Positions 6,740-44,541 of a stretch of DNA of 64,000 bases are shown in pieces. The stretch covers positions 19,282,001 through 19,346,000 of the forward strand of contig NC_047070.1 of NCBI RefSeq assembly GCF_902459465.1, written 5' to 3'. This stretch comes from Asterias rubens. Taxonomy: Eukaryota. A model generated the notes under the pieces. It was not told where the DNA came from. It saw nothing but the letters and a program-made list of their open reading frames with translations, and made no database searches. Each line of letters begins with the position of its first letter. Position 1 is the first letter of the stretch. Made by a program: the position numbers and the translations under genes.

Positions 6740-9700
6740 ATGTCTCGGGCTCAGGCGGAGAGTGTGATTAAAAACATCATTAGAGAAATAGCCCAGGAAT
6801 GTGCCAGCAAAGGACAAGCAGTCTCCGAGACGCTGGTAGCCTTCATGGTTAAAGCTGTTGTGTTGGATCCTGCTAATGAATTCAATGTTGACAGGACACT
6901 TACTAAAGATGACGTCCAAAAGCTAATAAAGGTCCGTTTATGGTTCGTTTTAATTATATAGGAAACTAAATCTTTGATGATCTCTCTTTTCAAATAGTGA
7001 GGGTAAAGAGAAGCATTCAAGTTGATGACGGGGTGAAAAGCTAGACTTTTATAAAAGATATGCAGGGGTTTTTACACTCTCCGCATTGGTTTAGAGTTCT
7101 ACAAGCAATTTTCAATAACATACTTTCTATGAGGTTGTCACCAATATTTTCAAATAGATTACTTTACTAATCCGAATTTCCTTGTTTTTAATAAAGGTGT
7201 ATTATGTATCAACTAGTCGGTTATAAAAGCGTGTGCTTTAATTTGTGTGTATTTTTTGTCTTGTTTCTTTCAATAGATTTGTGTGGATCACTTGTTGGAT
7301 ACAAGATCACCAGCTCTGGATACGGTGAAAATGCAGGTTTATTTTGATATGAACTACACCAGTAGAGGTAAGTAAAGGCCAGGGCTGCCAGGGTGGCGAT
7401 TTCACAAAGAGCTAAGATTGATCTTAACTGCAAATCAATAGTAGTTTGTTGGTGAAGTGTGATGTCTCAATACAAATCACTATGGTAACACATAAAATGT
7501 TGTCTTGCGATGAATTTAATTGCTTTTCTCCTGAAGACGTGCAGAGTATACTGTTCCAAACGTCGAGACCGAACCGGCTCTTTTCAGAGCCACCACTCCT
7601 TCAAAAAAGATTTTACTCATGGTTGAACCCGCAAGTTTACTATTAATATTTATATTTACTCTTATTGCTTTGTGATAATGCAAAAAAAGTAGGACTTATT
7701 TGAACGAAATACATCTCTTATACAGAATACATTTCATATTTTACCTCTGTTGTAGCGGACTTCTTGGATGAACACCGACGTGTTTTGGAGCAACGTCTTA
7801 CACCAGTAATTCGTGAGATAACGGATAGCCGAGCCCGCACTAGGGAGGAACTTGAAAGTCTCTACAGGAAGATTGTGTCCGCAGTGTTGCTCCGCTCAGG
7901 TCTTGGCTCACCCACAGATATTGCTGTGGTTCGTGAGGCAACAGGTACTTGTTTGACCTTCTTGTAGCATTGCATCATTCCTCATGTGATGAACAATGTC
8001 TCAGGAATGCATAGTATTGTCATACGAATTAGAAAATCCCATTGAAGTTTGTTTGATCATTTGTTCAACACTTAAAAATTGTCTATTTAAAACTGTAGGT
8101 ATTTTTTTTACTTAAGTTTTGACTCGATGAGAGACGCTTTCGGCAGCAGGTCTGTCTTTTTTGGGGGCTCTGAGCATGCGCACACTTGCTCAGTATTGTG
8201 CGTGTAGGTCTGAGAACGCGCACTACTGGCGAGAACTGAAAAAGGACTGTCCAAAAGTCTCCCATTTCAGTTAGAATGAATTAAAGTTTTTGAAATTTAA
8301 AGGCAGTGGACACTATTGGTAATTACTCAAAATATTTATTAGCATAAAACCTTACTTGGTAACGAGTAGTGGGGAGAGGTTGATAGTATAAAACATTGTG
8401 AGAAACAGCTCCCTCTGAAGTGCCATAGTTTTCGAGAAAGAAGTAGTTTCCCACGAATTTGATTACGAGACCTCACATTTAGAACTTGAGGTCTCGATAT
8501 CAACCATCTAGACGCACACAACTTCGTGTGATAAGGGCGTTTTTTTTTTCTTTCATTATTATCTCGCAAGTTCGATGACCACTTGAGCTCAAATTTTCAC
8601 AGGTTTGTTATTTCATGCATATGTTGAGGTACACCAACTGTGAAGACTAGTCTTTGACAATTACCAATAGTGTACACTGTCTTTAATGAATTTTTGTGTG
8701 TTTTATTTGTAGCTGCCCTACAGAGTGTGTTTCCACAGACGGAGCTTGGTACCTTTATGTCTCTAGTCAAGAGAGACAAAGAGAGACAACTCGTTGAACT
8801 GACGCAGATCGTCACCGGTATCCGCCTCTTTAATAAAGAATGTGGGAAAGGAGGAGAAGGCATTGATGATTGTGAGTTGGTCGCCATCTTCTTCCATCTG
8901 AATATATAATTTTTTCAGAAACAAAAATATTATGTAGCTTTAATTTCCAGTGTTTGTGAATCATGGGACTTTCTTCTATTGTGAATCTTGTAGCTCAGTG
9001 TAATAGAAAGAAAAACCGTAGCAAAGACAAATTCATGAATTGTTTTGTCCGATTTCAGTGCCTGCCATTTTGAATGAGGCGGTTCCAGCCACTACTCAGA
9101 ATGTAGATACAGCCATTCAGCGATCTTGTGATGTTGCTTTCAAGTATACAGGTAAAGTGATTCTTAACCATCTCAGTAAACTATTACATTAACTGCCAAT
9201 CAAGTAGTAATCAGCAAATGGTTAGAAGAACATCTTACATGCAGAGGTAAACAAAGCGTTTTTCTGGAGAATTATCTTCCTAATCAAAAGAGTCTACCCT
9301 GTTCTGGCTTTGAATATAGTGAAATGCAGAGGTGGGGTTTCGTAGATGAACAAACAGCTTGTGAATGCAGCCAGAAACCGAAAATGGAACACCAGCTAGT
9401 CTGCTCACTCCTTCTAGAGCCATGCAACCAAGATGGCCTGGGGTGGACTTCACAAAGAGTTAGGACTAGTCTTGTCTCGAGTTACGACGAGTTACTTATC
9501 CCAAGTTAGGATTAGCCTTAAGTTTTTTAATATCTCCAGGGACTAGCCCTAAAAGTAAGGACTAGTTCCAACTCTTTGTGAAATCAACCCCAGGAAGCTG
9601 TGTGCAGCAATGGATGGGGACTTGTGTAGTGACTCGATAATAAGTGAAATAAATATAAGTTACTTATCAGGTTGTATCTTGAAAATGACTCAGGTTTTTT

Positions 9701-12700: not shown

Positions 12701-15700
12701 CTCTGCCCCATTGCGTGTTGACCAATCACAACGCAACGAAGGTCTGACAAATAAGGTCCGACATGCGTGCGCGTATCTTGGCGCGCGTCAGAGTTGTGCA
12801 GAAAGGGATTGGAGAGCCCCATGTGTTCTTGCTCACACGTCGACGTGGGCAGAGCCTATTGGAACGGTCAATTGACATAAGGCAAGTTTTAACTTTTGTA
12901 TTTCAAGATCTTTCAAAGAACCTCTAAAGGCAGTGGACATTATTGGTAATTACTCAAAATAATTTTTCGCTTAACACCTTACTTTGTACGAGTAATGAGG
13001 AGCTGTTGGTTGTATAATACATTGTGAGAAACGGCTAGTAACGTAGTTTTCGAGGAAAGAAGTAATCTTCCACAAAATCGATTTCAGGACCTCAGATTTT
13101 GAATTTGAGGTCTCGAAATCAAGCATCTGAAAGCACACAACTTCGTGTGACAAGGGTGTTTTTTCTTTCATTATTATCTCGCAACTTCGACGACCGATTT
13201 TCACGGAGGCAATGAAGGCAATTTCCTCTATGCCCCCTGGGTTATTGCCTTGGTGCCCTCGAAATGCTCCATTAGATATTTACAATTTCCTCATAGAGTG
13301 CCCTTTATGCTTTGGTGCCCTTTGCTCTTTCAAAAGAGGCACACAGGCCAGTATACCGCTATGTCATTGTAACCCAATCCATTTCATTACTTTATGTTCA
13401 GGGTTACTGCGGCTGGGCATTGGTTCGTTTTGATCGTTTGCTGTTACCTGGTAATCCAGATATCGGAGTACTACGCTATAATGATCGCTACTATGTCTTC
13501 TCATCAAAGGAAGCAGCTTATGAGTTTGCTAGTGATCCCAACAGGTGAGTCTCTCATCAGGGTTAGAAGACTCTCAACCCTAGATACTCATTAATCCCTT
13601 GATGAGATTTGCAGTCGGACCAATCTTGGGGTGCGTTTGATTAGCTTCCCTGGGTCTACCCCGCGGTGCTCACTCGGTTGAGCCCCTGACAAGAGCTAAT
13701 CGAACGACCACACTCGCCCTCTCGTGGTAACGCCATGCACCTCAGGTCGCCCCCGAGTGATCCACTCCACAAGCAGGGCACTGGGGGCTGAACCGGGTGA
13801 GCCCCGTCAAAGCTATTTGTACATACCGGGGCAGACCGGGGTCGACCTGGGGAAGCTAAGAGAACGCACCCATAGATAAGAGGGTAAAGAGTCAAAAGCT
13901 TTGCTGTGAAATTCTCAATCCATCAAAACCAGACTCAACACGGGTATGGATTGTGGAGGATTAAGAAAGCTAATTACAGAGTGAAAGGTAGGGTCATCTT
14001 TTGGTTATGACCACCAAAAAATAGTGTGTAATTTTATCTGAAAGCTTACTTGGAAAAACTATTAAGCCTCCTGTGAAATTAATTTGTCTGAAACGCTCCA
14101 ACTGATTAGAACAGAGAAACGATTTGCGCATGATTTAAACGTTTCTCGGATTTCCGAGGGTTGGTTGCTGCTGAAGCTATAGGCGCATGTCCGCCACCAC
14201 TTGGTGTGCTGTGCCCATCGCCTCGTTTTGGGTTAGCATTGTGATGTACCTCATGCATAAATGTGAAGAGAGGCGTATAGTGTGACAAAAACCAAACGGG
14301 GACCCTTCCTTCCTTTGATAGCTACTGAAAGTGTGTATGTGCTTATTTTCAGGTATATCCAACATGTAGCAGAGTGTGCTAAGATATCTCCTGAACTAAT
14401 CCAGTTACTGGAGCTTCACGCTCAGTTTGCTACTATTACACCCTACACTCAGGTCAGTTCAAGTTAAAGTCAACTCTGTATTTTACTAAGGTCAGAGGGA
14501 AATGAGATTTTTACAATGCAAAAATAGGCTTAGCTGTTGCAAACTGCTTTACCAACCAAAAGGACCGATGGTATTGACCCTATTCACCTGAAGTCATCAT
14601 CAGAATAATCTTGGATGCGCCATTTTGGTGGTCAATGTCAACGTGTGTTATTCAGAGAAGTGCGCATTTTAGGTGAACCTATTGACCACCAACATGGTGA
14701 GCGTGGCATCAGTCGCCGCGTGTGACGCGCACGCAAGGGGTCAATCGGACCTAAAGGCAAACAAATGGTTAATTGCTTTATGTTTCAACCCAAGCAGAGT
14801 CTTTCTCAAAGGCTTTGTACAGTGTCTATCATTCAGGGTCTTTAAGTCCATATCTCTATATTATTTTGCCATCCTATAGAATAAGCTAAACCTTGAGAAA
14901 AATATAAGTTTCATTATTTTTATATGTTAAAATTTGACTTTGATTTAGAAGTTGAGACCGCCTGAGGAATATCATCGGCCTGATAGTCAGGTTTAAGAAT
15001 CCAAATGAATACATTTGATGATCATTTCATGAACGAGTCGTCTCTAACAATGTCAGAATAAAGTTTTATCCTTACGATTCCTATAACGTGACCCCCTTGA
15101 CCTTTGACCTACGTACAGGGCAAGGACCAAGGTCAGATGATAGAGAAGCCAATAACTAAATGTGATATGGGAGTGCAGACTGAAGTTCACCCAATAGAGT
15201 CTAACATCGTTAAGTCATATGAGTGGAATGAATGGGAGCTAAGAAGAAAAGCCATCAAACTGGTAAGCCAATCATTACAGTTTACATTCGGGAAAATTGA
15301 AGAAACAATTAATTTCAAAATTTTCATGAAGTGATATTCTTTCTGTGTTTTTTTGTGCACTTGGGGAAATATACGAAAAACTGTTTTAATAAGGCATGAA
15401 GTTTTTTTTTAGAAGAGCCCTACACCATGTCTAACATGTGGGATAGCCCTTATACTCAATTTGTTGTCCAAGGACAAAAATTCATGCCTGAAAAGTACTC
15501 AAACTATTGTGTGTTATTATAAATTGATTATTTATATGAGATAAAACTGATGAAATGCTCACACAAAAAGGAGTCAAAGAATGTTCTTCAATTTCTAACC
15601 CCAGCATTGCTAATCCAGAATGTACCCTTTCTTTGCCTCAGACCAACCTGCGTAACAAGGTGACTCACTCCATGCAGACCAACTTGAGTAATCTCAGACG

Positions 15701-16363: not shown

Positions 16364-18075
16364 ACCAGTTATGCAAATGAAAATTGAAAATAAAGTTTGA
16401 GTTTATTCCTGAAGGTATAAAAAGTCTAGACTATTGGAGACCATAAGTTGTAAGCCTGGTATACTATTGGATACTTGACAAAATCATTTTCCTTTTCCAA
16501 ACGACCCATAAAGTGTTGTTGTTGATGGCTGGTTTGTGACGCCAGTTTAACCCATTTTGTATTGACAGGAAACACTATCTTATTAACGCGGTCTTATACC
16601 CCGTGCTCAGTAGTAATATCCATCATAATTCAAAAAGGACCAGACTGTTTTCCCTTCCTGCTTAGGATTGGTCGTAGTGATTAGAAAGAGGGCAACTGAA
16701 GGTTAGCAATAATTAAAGATTCTAGAAATAGTTTATGGATATTTCCAAGCTGTTTTCAGTGACATTTATTTTACACTGTAAAAAACAAAATGACTGTATG
16801 TATATTTCCTGAATTGTTCAAAAGGTGTTGGCAACTGCACACACACATAATAAAAATCAATTTCACAAAAGAAAGTTTTGTACCAACAAATATTGAATGC
16901 AGATGAGTGCATTGTTGTTGAATACAATCACTTTGTGAAATCTGGACTACTCAAATTCAGAAGGCGAGGCTGAGTGAAATGGAATAGCCAGGGCCCAATT
17001 TCATGGCTATGCACTCCGCCAAATTCTGTGCTTTCGACCACGATTCCCCGCTTACGTGCAAGCGCCTAATTTCTGCGCTAGCCTTGTGACCTACAATGCT
17101 TGGTAACGTGGGGTACGCACGCCCAGAAGCAAACATTCGCCGCTAACCCGTGAGAAACGCTTGCCATAGGCACAGAATTCCCTGCTTCCGTAAGCGGCGA
17201 TTCTGTGCTTACGGTTAGCAGAGCCATGAAATTGGGCCCAGACTTCACCGAATAATTATATTCGGCTACACTGCATGAACACACTGCATTCAATATTTGT
17301 TTTATTAAAGTCTCATATTATATCCTTGTCATTTGAAATGTTTTGTTTCCGACTAAAACATGTACGACCTATGCTCTGAAAATTCTATTTAAATAATCTT
17401 AAATAACATGGAGGACGCGATATACGCAACAACCTTGTCCTTCGTGATAGGACCTTGCCTTGTTTGAAAAAAATTGTAGGAAAAGAATATTTTGGAAGCA
17501 ACAGCATTGCCAATGCTGTGAAGCATCCTACAATTATCCATATAGGACTGTATTTAATATTGGATTGTTGCGGCAGCATACATGTACAGGGCAACAAAAA
17601 GGATAACTTGTTCTACCAATCAAATGGCAAGAATGTTTGTGTGCAGTTAAAAAGAAAATTAAAATTGTATTCTGTCATTATTTGAAAACAATAAAAAAAC
17701 AGTTTGATTTCAATGAACACTATTTGATGTGTCAATGTTTAGCGTTATAGATGTTGTTATTAATTATCTGCAGTGAATACGCAGCGAGTATGAACCGGCC
17801 TTTACCGCCACACAAATCAAATCACAAACACCAACATGGGAGTTCCCATAGACTTAAGATTTTCCAGCGGAAGAGCTGTTTGGAAAATGAAAATGGCCTT
17901 GCCCTCTCAGAGATGAAATTGCCTGCTTTTATTCTCATAGTCTTACCGCCACACATCTCAAATCACGAACAGCGACATGGAGAGTTCCCATATACTTCAA
18001 GAATTTCCAGCGGAAGTGCTGTTTGCAGAATGGCCTTGCCCTCTCAAAGATAAAATTCTTGGCGTTTCCTCCCCT

Positions 18076-21000
18076 TCAAATCTCCCTCCTTGTTGTCTTC
18101 TTCTTGGGGGCCTCCTTCTCCTTTAACTTAGCAGATCTTGCAAATTGCTGATGGTTAACTCAGTTAAGGAGACAAGCAAATAACTATTTACATGAGCTTC
18201 TTTCTGTTTGGTTGAGTCTTCCATGAAGCAAGTGGGTCTGTCCACACTGTTGGGGCTATATGTGTGACATTTTAATACAAATGGGTAGCAAAAAGAAAAG
18301 CGTTTCGTCAAGCTTTTGTCACTTTTTCTTTCTTTATAAAGATCAAAACAAATTTCTCTGTATTTTAGTAATAACTGGGGATCATCTTCAAGATGATTGT
18401 TTGTTAACAGGACTGTTGGACAGACTTTTCATACAGTAATGGTGAGAAAGGCATAATAATATGAACAGATTGCCAAAAGGTTTGTCCCTTACAATGCTGT
18501 TCCTGTGAGGAATGTTTTCAGGCAAAACCAAGACAACTGTGTGGGTACTCGTGGGTACTCAAGAAACTACAAAGAATTTTCTTGAAGACATTATGTTCGT
18601 AACATGAAAGGATATTTGTCACAATTTGTCACACTATGTCTGCCAAGATTATTGTATTGTATTGTATTGCTTTCAATGCATGCAGTTGAAAAGGATACCA
18701 CTACGATGGGTTTGCCCTGTAGAATGTAACCATTGGTGTCCTTCAATGCTTTCTCAGCAGCAAACTCGCTGGGTAGACCAACAAACGCTTGACCTTTCAT
18801 TCGACCCTGGGTCATCAGCTGTATGGTAAACCTAAATGAAAAACCATAAAGAAAATAATAAGCTGCAGGGGAAATGAAAAGGTTAAAGCCCCCCCCCCCC
18901 CATCACACAGAACTCGTTCTCACTACAGACAGACCTAACTCGTTGCCAGAAATTATTACAAGGCCCACAGTATAGACATTTCTGACCAAGTTATACAAGC
19001 CAGACCAAATCCGTTTTACGATTTTTTTTAGGACGGGTTTGGACATCTTGAGAACTAGTTTGGTGTGACTTAGCCTTAACAAGCTTACATTTACAACCTG
19101 CTGTTGACCCCTTGCATGATACGTAGCTCACTAACATACTATTATCTTGTCCCCCATTTTGGGATTCAAAATACACACTGTATAGACCGTTCCATTGTTG
19201 ACATAGTTTTCCAACCTCGGTTGACAAAAATTGGGCTGTGATGTTGGGATAGAAATGTCTATACACAAAGGAAATGGTTGACACTTGTCACACGTTTCGC
19301 AGAGGTGCGTTCTGTGTCTGTAAGGCTTATGGGTAGAGACAGTGTTCACAGTTTTAAATGTTGATGTTTTTCTTACATGTCTTTATCAATTGGCGATGTC
19401 CAGTCCAGATAACGACCAAAGATATACTTCAAATCCTGAAGAAATAAAACACACAAAAAGAATGTGCCAAAAATCAGAACAACTTACATGTTTCGCTAGT
19501 CCATCACAACAAAATAATTAATTTAAAATATATAACTTGTAGAATCAAATTTAATGAACACTTAATATTGACTTGGGTAGTACGTTTTAAAAAAAGCAGT
19601 GAGTAAAGTTCACTGGAACTGATAGGTTTTTAGACTTACTTTTTCCTCGACTGTTTTAGCTAGGTTTTTAAGGTACAGCCTTGTGGTAGGTTCACCCCTC
19701 TCATAGCGCTTAAATACTGGATGCCTCTTTATTTCTAAAAAAAGAAAAGACAGAAAAGAAAACCATCCGGGAGATAGAGTGTGAAAGATAAACACAAAGT
19801 ATAAAGTTGTTTTTAATTTTGGCCCCAGTATATGTCCAAGATCTCTTAGCCCTTCGATCATCTTCACTGTCATCAGCTACCCGACGCCTTCGCACTTCTT
19901 CCACCCCAGATTTCCAGCTTTATGGATATGAACTCAGTCAATTCCTCCTCAACATCTTCATCTTCAAGAAACTGAGTCTCAAGATACTTACCATGTGATG
20001 GAAGTTTATTTCTGAGTTCCTTTCTGGATATAAACTCAGTCAATTCCTCCTCAACATCTTCATCTTCAAGAAACTGAGTCTCAAGATACTTACCATGTGA
20101 TGGAAGTTTATTTCTGAGTTCCTTTCTGGATATAAACTCAGTCAATTCCTCCTCAACATCTTCATCTTCATCTTCATCATCAGCTTCGTATAAACCCTTC
20201 TTGGAAGGAGCTTCATCTTTCTCAGTTACTGGATGCTCAAATGTTCCAAACCCTGAGACTTGTTGAGAAGACTCTAAAGTATCAGCCACTGATGGATCAT
20301 AGATACCCGGCAGTGATTGATCTACAAAGAAAAGGACTTCATGTAAATAAATCTGAGGAGGTTCACCACCAGGGGCAAATTTCATAGAGCTGCTAAGCAT
20401 GACATTTTTTCCTTGATAAAAAACAGGAGAACCAGCCAAATTTCCACTTGATTTTCAGGATAAGCAAACAACAGCTGAATACCAGTGACAAGCAATACGC
20501 TACAAATGGAAATTTAATCGATAATCCTGTTTTTATGAATTTCATGCTAAGCAAATTTTGGTGCTTAGCAGCTCTATGAAATTGGGCTCAGTTTTGTAGC
20601 CATGGTAGGCAGTGCTGGGTTGGCCTGCCCCAGGACTCATAAGTTTGGCTCAACAGTCCAAGCAAAATACATTGTACCGACCAGCACAGATTTCCCCTAG
20701 AAACAAATTACTTGTCCACTGTGGATTGATCGGAGACACAGCTAATGATAACAAGTATCATATGTCACAAAGAGAGAGAATTTATTGCATTGCCCAATAA
20801 CACCAACAGTTCGGAAAACTTGGTATCATGGGGTGTCGTGGCCGAGCGGTTAAGAGCTCCGAATTCAAGCTCTGCTCATTCTGTTCAGCAGAGTTTGAGT
20901 TCGAATCCCGGTCGTGACACTTGTTTCCCTGAGCAAGACACTTAACTATTATTGCTTCTCTCCACCCAGGGGTAAATGGGTATCTGTGAGGGCAGAGATG

Positions 21001-24000
21001 GTTCTTGTGATTGATTTAGCCGTCTAGCGCATTTGTTACACGAGGCTGTATACTCCCCAGGGAGCTGAGATGGTTTAAGGAGTGAATTAAGGCCCAGTGA
21101 CCAGGGGTAATATCTTGAAGCGCTTTGAGACACCCGTAGGGAGTGAAAAAGCGCTTTACAAAAACTCAATATTATTATTATTATCATGCACTTCAGCAAT
21201 AATGGCTCTGTAATTAAACATGAATAATTTTGTTGATCCGCTCGCCATTGGTAGACTTTAATAATAACTGCATTTCCAAAGTGCCAAATTGCCAAAGGAT
21301 ACAAGGCGCTGAAGAAAAAGGAAACAAGACGTTACAAAGATGCTGTCGACCAGCTACAGACGAGGAGTAAAGGTTGGTCTTCCGAGACTAATTGAAGGCT
21401 GGGACACTGTTAGAGTTCCTGCTTTGGATTCCATAATCGGAGAGTGGCATTGTTGGATTTATTGCCCACCACTAAAATTGGCCATAGAGAATAACCAGTA
21501 ACCATAGCAACTCCAGAGGAGGCCTAGCACCAGCTCCTGGCTGGAAGAGGCCTAGAGGCTGCCCTCAATCATCCTGGGCCCAACAACTTGGCTGGCCTAA
21601 AGAAAGCGACCACATGTGGCGTGAGGCTGTAGGACGTGGACACAGGAGATCGGTGCGACGGACCCTTGCTGTCTCTGTTATTGACTGATTGAATAACCAG
21701 TACTGTACAACATGTTCATCAGTTAAAATCATACTTTCTAGTTACAATACAACACAATTTCTGTTGTTTACCTTTCACAGCTTGTGTTTGGCCATCCACA
21801 CACCCTCCGATGTTCTCTGTTATCTTGAATTCAATTCTCTTGCTGGCTGCCATCAGTGGTTGTTCAAACACATTGACTGCCTTAGCTGGTTGAGATGTCA
21901 GCGGACCAGTCTGTGGGTTCTTAGGGGGTGCAATGGACTGCAATTTATGTCTCTTTGGTTGCTGCAGAGGCTTCGTCTTTAAGGGCCTCTTCAGGGATGC
22001 TCTCACTTCTTCCGTTCTGAAAAATATTGTCAATTAGAAACACAAAATTTAACTACTTATAACAATACTGAATAGTTCTTATATAGTAAATTTTACAATA
22101 AACGAATCAATGTGCTTTACATTAGTGCCCTGGTTATTGCGCCAACCACATTCTTTTAATATTTCTCAGCTCCCTGGGGAGTATACAGCCCAAGCTGCTA
22201 TGCGCTCAGAAGGCTTTTTAGAACACAATATCAACTCTACCCACACAGGTCCCATTTATACCCCTGGGTGGACAGAAGCAATTATAGTAAAGTATCGCGT
22301 CAAGGACACACGTGTAACGCCCGGGATTCGAACCACACATCCAATGACTTGCCCACCAGAACTTGAAGTTGATGCTCTAAACCACTGGACCATGACACCC
22401 TACAAACTTTAAATACATTAAAAGCTTTGTATAAATAATAAAATAATGAAGACTAATAAGGGTGAAGACATTGCAAAACTTCTCACTTTTCTCTTTCTTC
22501 CGGATCACTCTCAATCTCAGATTCCTCGTCACTTGAACTTGATACATCCATAGCCATGACTGACCGATTACTGTCAATAGAGGGCTGCAGTACAGTATCC
22601 TCTGCCTGATAGAAAATAAATAATACAAGTCTAATCAATTACAAAATTCAAATTACAGAATATTGTGACCTAACCTTCTTATATCTGTTTTTTAATTTTT
22701 TTTATGCAAGTCGCTAGACACACAAGGCCTGAAGGCCACTTCAAGGTGTGGGCTGCAATAATTTTTTTCCAGAGGCTGATTGCCACCTACTCCTAGGGCT
22801 GAAACAGGGTGACCCCTTTTACAGCCCATACGAATGTAGGCTTGGGTATCATCAGTCCGAAGCCTGGCCGGCAGAGCAGAAAGCACTACCTCCCCAATTT
22901 TATGTAGCAAGTGTCACGACCGGGATTCGAACCCACACTCTGCTGATCAAACACCAGAGCTTGAATCCGGTGCTCTTAACCGCTCGGCCATGACATGCCA
23001 TTCAATCATATAGTGTTATTTTGATAAATAGGCTAAATATAGTCGCATCAGAAATATAAAGGTTCTTAGTTCAATTTGTATGGAATTTGTAAAACTGCTT
23101 TTGCATGATTGATCTCCTGGAAAATGGGGTTTATTCTTCAAGAGTAGGTCATCAAAGTATTTGTTTTGCAAAAAGAAACATTCGTTTTCGAAGTAAAACA
23201 TTAGGTTTTTAATTTTGACTTATTTCTTTTCCAATTTATATGCATTTTTCATTTAAGGATCTTTGATCACAACATATATGAAATTGCCGTTGATGACCTT
23301 ATATTTCTCAGCAGACCTTATAAAGAAGTTTTTTTTTTTTTACAACATTCTATTAACTTGATCTTTACAAAGATTTTAATATAAATGATCCAGGTCTAAG
23401 TATTCAAAATCATTTAAAGGCAGTGGACACTATCGGTAATTACTCAAAATAATTATTAGCATAAAACCTTTCTTGGTGACGAGTAATGGGGAGGTTGATG
23501 GTATAAAACATTGTGAGAAACGGCTCCCTCTGAATGCCATAGTTTTTGAGAAAGAAGTAATTTTTCACGAATTTGATTTCGAGACCTCAGATTTAGAACT
23601 TGAAGTCTCGAAATCAACCATCTAAACGCACACAACTTCGTGTGATAAGGGTGTTTTTTCTTTCACTATTATCTCGCAAGTTCGATGACCAGTTGAGCTA
23701 AAATTTTCACAGGTTTGTTATTTTATGCATATTGTTGAGATACACCAACTGCAAAGGCTAGTTTTTGCACTTATCAATAGTGTCCACTGCCTTTAACAGC
23801 AAAACAGAAATACTTTGTAGCATATTAATATTAACTAGAAGACTCACCAGTGGTGGAGTAGGTGTGACTGGACCAAATGGAGCTGGCAGACTCATCTTAT
23901 TCATCAAGTGAAGTACTTGGGTGTAAAACTTGGGAGCTGATGCCAAGGTATTGATGATGTTTGTTAAGATGTTTACAGTTGGTGCAGGGTAGCGATAACG

Positions 24001-27000
24001 AACTGTTGGATTCAGTGGCACATCAAATCTAAGCAGAATTAAATAAATCCCAACAATGCTTGAGAGTGATGAAAAAACCTTCAAGGAGGATGCCTAAAGA
24101 TCGACTAAAGCACTGTAGTTCGCAAGCCTGAGAAACTAACTCTTTGTGAAATCGACCCCAGGAGGGCTTTCAGTGGTAATGTTTACAAATTGTCTGGACT
24201 ATGGGCTGAATCTTATTTGATTCTTCAACCTACCCGTGATTGGATGATAACCCCATCAGTCTTTGATGAAGGCCTTTCATCTCTTCTTGGAGTATGGTCG
24301 TTTGACGTTCTCCTTCATTGCTTTGTTTCATACCATCTTCATCAGTTCTAGAAATAGTCCCTTCCTTACATCTGAATATATAAAGGAAGACAAATATACA
24401 TTGCTATAAAATGGTTTCAATTCAATTCAATTTAACATTCATTTCCGTACTCACAATAAGAAAAGATAGAATCATAGACAAAAATAAAGTAGTACAACAC
24501 TAGCAAAGAGTAAACTTAACCAATGATACTGAAAAAATGTGATAATATAAGTTTTGATTAACGGATTGTTCAAATAAGCCAAGGTTTGTGGGAAACAGCC
24601 TTAGAAAAAAAGAAAATAATAATAAGCAAAAACAACATAAAAATAAACACTACAGGAGAAAATGCAACAATGCACCAGTAATGAGCTAAATATACAGATA
24701 ATGGTCAAGAAAATAATGAAAATTATGACCAGCTAGAATCCTAAAAAAACCTGAGAGCTAAGGATGAGCAGTGGAATCAGGAGAGAAAGCTAAGTTACCT
24801 AATGAGAGAGAAATGAGGTTAAACATTGAGCATTCTACGTTCAAGTTCAAACAGTTATTGCACAATATGGGAATTCCGACCTCCATAATGGTGTAGTTGT
24901 TTAAATGTTTTTGTTGACTGTGTATATTTAAATTAAATTTGAAGTAAATTGATTTACCTGTCCTCTGTGTCAGCGGCTAGCTCAGCCTCAGGAATACTGC
25001 CAGTATTCTTGGCATATTCCACCACAAGTGTATGACCCAAGACTTTCAACTGATGCAATCTGGAAAGGGCCTAGAATTTAAAAACAAATAACAACAAACG
25101 TATTTGTAATATTTTATGAACCTGCAAAAATACCGATATTACAGATTGCTTTAAATTAATGGTTTTGCTCATATTTTGTATGACAATTCTTTTAAAAGTC
25201 TTTGGAAGCAAGCCTCCTTCCCAATAAACTGCTGCCTCAACTATAATTAGACAAAAACATATATTGTATTATATGAATTGTATTTACTTACTTGTTCTGC
25301 AGATCTGTGGTCTTTGAATGAAGCAAAAGCTGTATGTTTCTACACAAAACAAATTTGAAAGATTTATTTACAATTTTACTAAACAAACAAAACAAAGGCA
25401 CGAGTTTCTTGAAATAAAAATCTGTTATCAAGCTGAACACTAGAAAAAAAATCCTCAACCACACATATTTGGGAGTAGAATTAAAAAACAAATTAGAGGC
25501 AGTGGACACTATTGGTAATTACTCAAAATAATTATTAGCATAAAACCTTACTTGGTGATGAGTAATGGGGAGAGGTTGGTAGTATAAAACATTGTGAGAA
25601 ACGGCTCCCTCTGAAGTGGAGTAGTTTTCGAGAAAGAAGTAATTTTTCACAAATTTGATTTCGCGACCTCAAGTTTAGAATTTGAGGTCTCGAAATCAAG
25701 CATCTGAAAGCACACAACTTTGTGTGACAAGGGTGTTTTTTTCTTTCATAGTGTGGCGAAAACTGCCTTGCGTTTTAGGAATAATTATAGAGTTGTTGAG
25801 ACAATTTAAATTATATCTCATTAACATGTCTTGCTAATTTACCATTATTGTAATCTTAACTGCAGCTAAATTAAGTGTTCACACATCTGGTTGTGCGTAT
25901 TGGTCAGTGCGGCACGCTTACAAACTGCTAGCGCGCACGCTACTAAATGTGTTTACATGTGTTTTCTTAACGCTTATAAATAAACCAATTAGTTCTCTGC
26001 CTTCGGCAAGCTGCGTGCAGCGCGTACTTCTGCTCGGCTTTAAAAGGGGACGAAAACTAGAGATCGGGGCTCAGTTGCTTCCAGACTCGAGATCGCCAGT
26101 CAAGACCTCAAAACCTCAAGACCTCAAGAACTCAAGACCTCAAGAACTCAAGACCATTCAAGATAACACACACACGCAAATGATGGTACTCACTCTATTT
26201 ATTGGCGAATCTCATTAGATAATTACTACAACACGAGCAGCCACGCTACCATGTACTGCTGCGTGCGAATGAACCAGTGGACTGATTGATTGCAGATTAC
26301 CTTAATATAATACCGTTTAAATCAAGAGAGGGCGCTATGTACATTTTGTGATTGAACATGATTGAATAAAATACACACTGTGTAGTTCCTTGCGGTAAAT
26401 AAAAATTAACGACAATGCATTGCCAAATCGCGCTCGTGTGTACAAAAACACTAGTTGCGATAATCGTAACCCTCCATCCTCCCGACGGTCGGAGACCGGA
26501 GGGTTACGACACAAGACTGATACTATCGGTGTAACTAGCAGTTTTGACCAGTTTTTGCCAGACTCGTGATCAGATTCGTCCTTTTTTTCCACTTTCCAAA
26601 ATCATGACAGACATTCTAAACACATGGAGTTGATCTTTATTGTATGACAACGTCATCTGCAACCCTTAAAACAACATCATGAAAATATTTGGCAGAAAAA
26701 ACGACAAAAACTTACCAAAAGACTGACCGAATATATCCATAATCCATAGCGGGACCAACTAGTGATTTTGAAGGTCGCACTTGCTTGGCAACAACCAATC
26801 AGCGTGACCCAACCATCGATGTCGTATGCGTATCGGCCATTCCAGCTTGCAAACTCACCGCCTGTGAGTGTAAGCACCGATCCCCCGCACCGAGTGCGCA
26901 GCATGCAGGCATGTACATGTACATGTACATGTACTGTATGAACATCGTGCGTGCACAAACTATACAGCTCGTAAGTACCGTGTGCTGCTCCATACCCCCA

Positions 27001-42246: not shown

Positions 42247-44163
42247 TTAAATGAACCAGTCATAAATATATAAGACATTGTTTTTATTTTGCAGGTTTAA
42301 AAATAATATATTGATTAACTAGAGCTCTAGTGAGATGTGTGAACAAAATAAAAGATATTTTGCTATTTAATCATGAAGATGAATATGAAATAACCAAAAC
42401 TCAGGTCTGACCCATGACGCCTGAGGTCATTTGTGCAAAATTATGTTTATTTCATTAGCTACATTATACAAATGTAACATAGTGTAGACGGTGAATGATT
42501 ACTGAAATCAAAAGATTACATGGACCATAGTTTGCTAAAATTAAAAAATAGGAGGAAGGCAAGGGACTCTGGACAATTTCAGACACATACGCAGCATTGT
42601 TGATAACAATGTTCAATCCTTAAAAAGTTTTACAGCAAAAGTCAGAGCACACTCAGTCTCTAGAACTATCAGGTTTGTTCCGCTATTGTCTTCACTAGTA
42701 CTTTGAGTTTTAGGAGTACATGTACGTAGAAAATGGACAACGTTGGAGAACTGGGTTCAACAAAAACTCAATTTGTCTATCGTGGCTGTGATTGTAAAAG
42801 TTAGCAATTGAATGGCAAAGCAAAACTCATTGAGAATGAAAGCTTTGATCTTGTCATTGTTGGAATCACAAGATCCATAAAATGCTTTGTACAGTTAGTT
42901 TGCATTGCTGCCATTTCATGGTACTTATTGAAACTTTTATATTATTTAACCCTTCCCGTCACGCAATACTAAATCACTATAGCAACAGCCACATCAAATC
43001 TCATTGCATGTTGTGTTAGTCAATATTTGACTTTGCCTTTTTTTTTTCAAACAAAACACTTCACCCCTCAAACCTATCTTCCATTTATATTGGGTCATAT
43101 TGCTATTGTTAACAACCAGCCGTCTAAACATTGTTTACGCTCCTGCGAGCCTGGACAACCTTTCACCTTATTGATTCGAGCTGAGTTTGAATTGTCGCTA
43201 GACCAAAGGTCTCTTAAATTTAGTTTTCTGGTGGTTGTAAAGGGTATTGCATTGGTGGAATGATTTTTATGTTCAACTCAGGGCAGTGTTAGAGAATACA
43301 CCTGCGTTTTAAAAAGTGTTTTTATGTTTCATGGAAGGTTGTTGACGAAGTCATAATGTGTAAATATTCTTGTTTCAGAATCTGGCATTTTAACATGAAT
43401 CTTATGCTGACTGTGATGGCTTTTACCTAGCCGCTGATCTTCAATTTGACTCAGACTCATTATATGGAAACTACATGTAAGTTATTATTGAATGATGGGT
43501 TTTGTTTTAATATTGATTGATCAGAATTATATTTCAAGATCTAATTTATATTTGCTGTCGTTTGTTGTTTTTGTTTTTGTTTGTTAATATTTGTTCGCTG
43601 GGATGTATGTTGGATATTGAATAAATAAAATTAAATAAATTTCATAGTAATGTTATTCTTACACACGTTAGCACATTAAATCGTCTAAAAACATCTACAG
43701 GCTTTGATATAATTAATCCGTGGGTTGAACAAAGAACAATAGACCGATCCATTAAGCTCCGCCCCATTGCGTATTGGCCAATCACAACGCAACAAAGGTC
43801 AAACAAATAAGGTCCGACATGGGTGTGTTGGCGCGCGCGGTAGAAATGTGCTGAAAGGCATTGGAGAGGCGCACAGTTCTTGCTCACACGTGTGTCGTTG
43901 GCGGAGCTTAATGGATTGGTCTATTGACTAGAGCCGAACTCCTGGTTAATTGTTTGATGATAGAAATAATTAATAAATGTCATTAGAATACACTATGAAA
44001 GGACATTAAGCAAGTTCATTGGATAGTTAGTTACAAAAATAAAACTCATATAATCTTTTTTTTATGTTACACTTATTACCTGTTCATGGTTGTGGTGTTG
44101 TCATTTAGCCATCTAGAAAGACACTACTAAAGTCGAAATGTCATAACTATTATTTACCTTTAA

Positions 44164-44541
44164 AGGCAGTGGACACTATTGGTAATTACTTAAAATAATT
44201 ATGAGCATAAAACCTTTCTTGGTGACGAGTAATGGGGAGAGGTTGCTGGTATAAAACATTGTGAGAAACGGCTCCCTCTGAAGAGCCTTAGTTTTTGAGA
44301 AAGAAGTAATTTTCCACGAATTTGATTTCGAGACCTCAGATTTAGAACTTGAGGTCTCAAAATCAACCATCTGAACGCACACAACTTCGTGTGACAAGGG
44401 TGCTTTTTCTTCCATTATTATCTCGCAACTTCGATGACCAATTGAGCTCAATTTTTCACAGGTTTGTTATTTTATGCTTATGTTGAGATACACCAACTGT
44501 GAAGGCTAGTCTTTGACAATTACCAATAGTGTCCACTGCCT
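44164..44541. mobile_element. TTAA-flanked MITE family A, full copy
   Basis: Same TIRs and body; TTAA at 44160-44163 and 44542-44545. Confidence 0.85.

Follow-up and report, generated by a model that had tools for sequence, protein, structure and literature searches.

From the data reported here, we suggest that the minor intron of RNPC3 in the sea star Asterias rubens is normal and that ATATCCTTTC, a second match to the U12 donor consensus inside this intron, is very probably a chance motif that arose recently in a fast-changing, low-complexity stretch and has no appreciable role as a donor or in U11-based regulation. The intron itself, at 18148-18698 on the minus strand of the window (the whole stretch of 64,000 nt analysed here, to which all positions refer unless another locus is named), is an ordinary, correctly annotated and deeply conserved RNPC3 minor intron. 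Because this intron is ancient and shared, and the look-alike belongs to a single species and shows no sign of use, the starfish RNPC3 locus is ordinary. The initial annotation had combined a U12 GT-AG intron in an RRM of RNPC3 with a nested AT-AC intron or a U11 decoy circuit; the former part of this interpretation is supported, the latter is not.

The 13.5 kb around the site in RNPC3 are 100% identical to the A. rubens chromosome record LR699100.1 (L004). The minus-strand gene is RNPC3, which encodes the U11/U12-65K protein. When its 59-residue exon at 23848-24024 was used as a query, RNPC3 orthologues across animals were found, and the C-terminus of the 548-residue A. rubens RefSeq protein XP_033632884.1 (P0265), ...GKPIVVQFARSAKLKEKEAPKKKTTRREI, is the exact product of the last two exons of the gene. 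The penultimate coding exon (18699-18831, minus strand) encodes the RRM2 core FTIQLMTQGRMKGQAFVGL...GKPIVV, matches the tail of XP_033632884.1 and ends with ...CCCATCGTAGTG at 18699; the two junctions that bound it, 18829(+2)/19375 and 18147/18699, are both present in four RNA assemblies. Translation and RNA contigs place the last coding segment, QFARSAKLKEKEAPKKKTTRREI followed by the TGA stop (18076-18078), at 18076-18147 on the minus strand, and the 3'UTR continues in the same exon as the stop. In the 3'UTR and just beyond it (17200-17290 and 17809-18069) lie short dispersed repeats with many loose ends, over which the summed RNA-contig depth reaches from thousands to hundreds of thousands; this depth comes from repeat copies transcribed elsewhere in the genome and is not RNPC3 signal. 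Farther upstream in the gene, the 3' end of one RNPC3 coding exon and the GT donor of that exon have been duplicated in a 102-nt tandem repeat with 2.5 copies (19918-20170). The repeat unit equals 34 codons, and the reading frame remains open across the copies. In L009, an independent A. rubens contig, one copy fewer is apparently present; the difference points to a copy-number polymorphism, which, judged from sequence, could make in-frame alternative donors available in RNPC3.

The RNPC3 minor intron is 551 nt long and in phase 0; it begins with GTATCCTTTTC at 18698, its last position is 18148, and its assignment draws on donor and branch-site matches, RNA contigs and orthologues. Its authentic 5' splice site, GTATCCTTTT (18689-18698, minus strand), matches RTATCCTTT and is used in RNA contigs. 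Near the other end, directly ahead of TGAGTTAAC/CATCAG and with no pyrimidine tract, lies the branch-point sequence TCCTTAAC (18163-18170, minus strand; consensus TTCCTTRAY), which all four sea stars share. Counted from the second A of TCCTTAAC, the AG is at 16 nt, within the range of branch-site distances accepted for U12 introns, and the AC proposed as an alternative acceptor is at 10 nt. All the letters quoted in the initial annotation for the donor, the inner motif, the branch site and the CATCAG end were recovered on the minus strand. In terms of mechanism, U11 would recognise GTATCCTTTT at 18698 and U12 would recognise TCCTTAAC at 18170-18163, as suggested by the consensus sequences.

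Splicing of the intron was followed in Logan contigs, i.e. assemblies rather than raw reads, from four public A. rubens runs placed on 17200-19800. The joint 18147/18699 is exact in all four runs, at depths of 8.7 to 324, with 551 nt skipped and GT..AG on the gene strand. Thus, the outer junction, whose presence in RNA had been named beforehand as a check, is found in every contig set, and the proposal of a GT-AG U12 intron that splits the C-terminal RRM of the RNPC3/65K protein is borne out by its letters, by this junction and by conservation from sea stars to fish. The RNA contigs also show that exact excision between 18699 and 18147 joins ...KPIVV to QFARS... and so completes the C-terminal RRM. 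The two introns upstream of 18148-18698 are likewise spliced as expected. A single run (X8) contains an unspliced contig that extends from exon into intron (18221-18728) at a depth of 9 versus 324 for the spliced form; it represents the low level of unspliced minor intron or pre-mRNA that is usually seen.

The orthologous loci compared (L001, L002, L003, L006, L007 and L008), in each of which the last two coding exons were located, are from Acanthaster, Patiria, Asterias amurensis (L003), the urchin Diadema, the acorn worm Ptychodera and gar (L006). A. amurensis is the sole other asteriid and the closest relative in this set; Amphiura and Antedon, for which no gene is recorded under exactly that product name, lie outside the comparison. 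All six taxa have an intron with a U12 donor at the same phase-0 codon boundary, ..P[IL]VV/[QS]FARS.., the donor being GTATCCTTTC in both Acanthaster and Diadema, GTATCCTTCC in Patiria, GTATCCTTTT in A. amurensis, GTATCCTTAC in Ptychodera and GTATCCTTTA in gar. A branch site of the TCCTTAAC type is present near the 3' end of the intron in all of them except gar, in which it is weaker (CCTTTAC). In other animals, short ORF fragments continue with VVVSF (GTA TCC TTT) after the RNPC3 exon. A scan for QGKPIVV directly before GTATCCTT in JGI metagenome contigs, as a route to further asteroid loci, gave 0 matches. In Lingula anatina, RNPC3 (L010:2501-3961) is a single uninterrupted ORF of 486 aa as translated directly from DNA and is thus an intronless gene that has lost the minor intron together with every other intron; being intronless, it is uninformative on the RNPC3 minor intron. 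Human RNPC3 appears among the minor-intron genes in PMC6865273. Given the shared codon boundary across taxa, the match to the RefSeq protein and the human listing, the outer intron was already known, and the locus, as the evidence stands, is not a discovery.

The inner look-alike ATATCCTTTC (18606-18615, minus strand) starts 83 nt into the intron, exactly where the initial annotation had placed a second U12 donor consensus. How surprising is it? With a first-order Markov model, whether its training set is the intron, the gene or the whole window, 0.015-0.019 occurrences of RTATCCTT are expected in the 543-nt intron body, so that ATATCCTTTC is roughly a 1-in-50 event for this intron. In the whole window, RTATCCTT occurs 9 times versus 4.7 expected; a count of 9 is attained in 6 of 100 shuffles. 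On these expectations and counts, the motif is mildly unusual and not compelling. If several hundred starfish U12 introns of kilobase size are assumed (a working assumption rather than a computed figure), a second motif of this kind would be expected by chance in tens of them.

The surroundings of ATATCCTTTC suggest that it most likely arose by chance as the local sequence turned over. Along most of the RNPC3 locus A. rubens and A. amurensis are ~90-94% identical, and in the last intron the first 30 nt and the last ~445 nt align, with flanks about 93-94% identical. The sole gap in this otherwise alignable intron is a 75-nt low-complexity segment (18594-18668, minus strand), which consists of (AATAC)n, then GTGACAAAT twice, then ATATCCTTTC, and has no counterpart in A. 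amurensis. At the equivalent place A. amurensis has 373 nt of unrelated DNA, 322 nt of which are a copy of a dispersed repeat (L003:13524-13845) that sits exactly where the A. rubens segment does. This ~322-nt repeat is common in both Asterias genomes, with at least 5 full-length copies in the window; it is found there at 44160-44480, 23414-23731, 8297-8621, 25497-25741 and 12927-13199. We also considered the 75-nt segment itself as part of a mobile element and rejected this idea, as neither the window nor the other loci contain a second copy.

Conservation of the inner motif in relatives had been proposed as a check, and here the claim fails: ATATCCTTTC is missing from all three other sea stars compared (A. 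amurensis, Acanthaster and Patiria), and in Acanthaster and Patiria no second U12 donor motif occurs anywhere in the orthologous intron. Because it is not conserved and lies inside the unalignable 75 nt, ATATCCTTTC is new at the level of the species and sits where the intron is under least constraint. Within A. rubens it is kept in three haplotypes, namely the reference, the unspliced X8 contig, in which the A-run directly ahead of the motif is longer by two A's, and L009, an independent metagenome contig with 98.9% identity. This retention counts against the reading of ATATCCTTTC as a product of chance, as does the fact that a perfect 9/9 match to the U12 donor consensus is found in a U12 intron of a gene family known for U11-based feedback; moreover, both branch-site distances, 16 and 10 nt, would allow use of the site.

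The nested AT-AC intron proposed in the initial annotation would run from the inner motif to an AC dinucleotide at 18154-18155 (minus strand; context AAC/C). The AC is indeed present, ending at 18154, 6 nt before the AG and after the branch site, and the predicted product also follows from the letters: joining the inner AT to this AC adds 89 nt that read ...VVVSFSTACIESNTIQYNNLGRHSVTNCDNISNLQDLLS and then a stop, with the protein tail ...NCDNISNLQDLLS. An AC 6 nt ahead of the AG carries no information. AT-AC introns usually prefer YAC as acceptor. Set against an AT-AC pattern of a ATATCCTTT donor, a U12 branch site and a YAC ~10-15 nt downstream, the donor and the branch site fit, and the acceptor is an AAC at 10 nt from the branch A with no pyrimidine at -3. 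In the RNA contigs no junction ends at this AC. A joint 18616->18153 or 18616->18147, or an exon extension ending at 18616, is found in 0 contigs of the four RNA assemblies; the 18615/18154 junction is thus absent from the same four contig sets that all contain the outer junction. Contig depth over 18592-18678, which the inner splice would turn into exon, is zero in three runs and in the fourth is that of the single unspliced contig (9 vs 324). At the protein level, a query of the exon plus read-through (79 aa) against a collection of 5.8 billion proteins returned nothing ending in ...NCDNISNLQDLLS; the sole match carrying the extension was the window's own unspliced ORF, ...NCDKYPFMLRT. Likewise, the 90% cluster of XP_033632884.1 contains no alternative full-length isoform. 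With no inner junction in the contigs of four runs, no predicted tail among proteins and an AAC in place of the usual YAC, the nested intron finds no support.

It could be argued that ATATCCTTTC acts as a weak cryptic U12 donor that shares the branch site with the authentic one and is joined to the AAC or the CAG acceptor, yielding trace amounts of frame-shifted, unproductive mRNA as splicing noise. The perfect donor consensus and the distance of the branch site from either candidate acceptor (10 or 16 nt) are in line with this idea, and contigs drop rare isoforms, so that an isoform at about 1% or less is beyond their reach. Yet no contig with the junction or the extension was seen in four runs, including those with gene depths of 143 and 324, no protein fragment has the predicted tail, and the authentic donor lies upstream, adjoining the exon. 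We therefore regard such low-level use of the motif as unlikely, and hold to the reading of ATATCCTTTC as a chance arrival without appreciable function.

Regulation through U11 requires a comparison with vertebrates, in which U11 controls RNPC3 and SNRNP48 by binding to U12 donor motifs that occur in duplicate (PMC5473595, PMC8329584). The copies of this element, the USSE, are highly conserved; they do not serve as donors themselves but activate an upstream U2-type 3' site (PMC5473595, PMC8329584, PMC3584512). In the gar RNPC3 3'UTR (L006:19925-19953), downstream of the gar counterpart of this U12 intron, GTATCCTTC starts at 19925 and ATATCCTTT 19 nt later at 19944, ~480 nt beyond the stop codon; from its letters, this tandem reads as a textbook USSE. 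An alpha-amylase gene lies downstream of gar RNPC3, as in mammals. When the gene and ~2.5 kb beyond it were searched for tandem U12 donor motifs, none was found in the sea stars, Diadema or Ptychodera, and only gar has a true tandem USSE. This pattern agrees with PMC3584512, which describes conservation of the USSE as strongest in vertebrates, and the lack of a tandem USSE in RNPC3 of the sea stars, urchin and acorn worm compared here is a useful negative on the age of the 65K feedback loop. Two further sites in the A. rubens gene were considered and set aside. The 3'UTR candidate TTATCCTTT (17598-17606) has a T at +1 and reads TTATCCTTA in A. amurensis. The mid-intron GTATCCTTTGG (21295-21302, minus strand), considered as a USSE-like site, is single, lies in non-exonic DNA and is shared only with A. 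amurensis. A strong pyrimidine tract plus AG precedes it by 6 nt, and GTTTCCTTT by 23 nt; A. amurensis (L003:11268) has an identical copy of this stretch (21295-21325), which occurs once in the window and has no equivalent in Acanthaster or Patiria.

The remaining explanation, which we consider highly unlikely, holds that ATATCCTTTC is a young, A. rubens-specific U11-binding decoy or competing donor through which high U11/U12 levels would divert or block productive splicing and so exert negative feedback on 65K, independently of the vertebrate USSE; the vertebrate feedback through duplicated U12 donors, the presence of such a tandem in gar and the about 3% of unspliced RNA in one run speak for it, as does the consideration that sea-star RNPC3, having no other tandem, would need another device if feedback exists, but even the congener A. 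amurensis lacks the motif, no isoform was found in RNA contigs or in the protein collection, and NMD would not be expected for the AT-AC isoform because its stop would fall in the last exon. If the inner site did work, it would represent a second, independently evolved device by which the minor spliceosome senses how abundant it is, with U11 bound to the RNPC3 transcript as the sensor.

The design of the starfish locus also differs from that of the USSE. The likeness is that two U12 donor motifs, GTATCCTT then ATATCCTT, lie on the RNPC3 sense strand. However, the starfish copies are 83 nt apart, while those of the gar USSE are 19 nt apart; the first starfish copy is a working donor, while USSE copies are not used in splicing; no alternative upstream 3' site is involved in starfish (none is among the RNA-contig junctions), while the USSE activates one; and the second starfish copy is confined to one species, while the USSE is highly conserved. 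Thus, an autoregulatory circuit of competing donors or a U11 decoy, as inferred in the initial annotation, is not upheld: the motif is unconserved, its spacing and its genuine first donor are unlike the USSE, and the isoform is missing. Our data are better described by a normal minor intron in which a chance motif has recently appeared.

Similar considerations apply to U12 introns that are nested or alternatively spliced from competing donors. As in such systems, two donor-like motifs could share one branch site in A. rubens RNPC3, but the second donor here has no transcript support; alternative splicing involving U12 introns has been described as almost entirely absent (PMC3584512). The closest known counterpart of the starfish intron is instead the vertebrate RNPC3 minor intron. 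Sea-star RNPC3 ends in the exon after the minor intron and, unlike the vertebrate gene, has no further regulatory module downstream. The intron itself is of the same gene, the same codon boundary (..P[IL]VV/QFARS..), the same GT-AG subtype and the same GTATCCTT donor (gar L006:18950-19378), and it differs from its vertebrate counterpart in length and internal sequence only. The RNPC3 minor intron is, thus, at least as old as the common ancestor of echinoderms, hemichordates and vertebrates.
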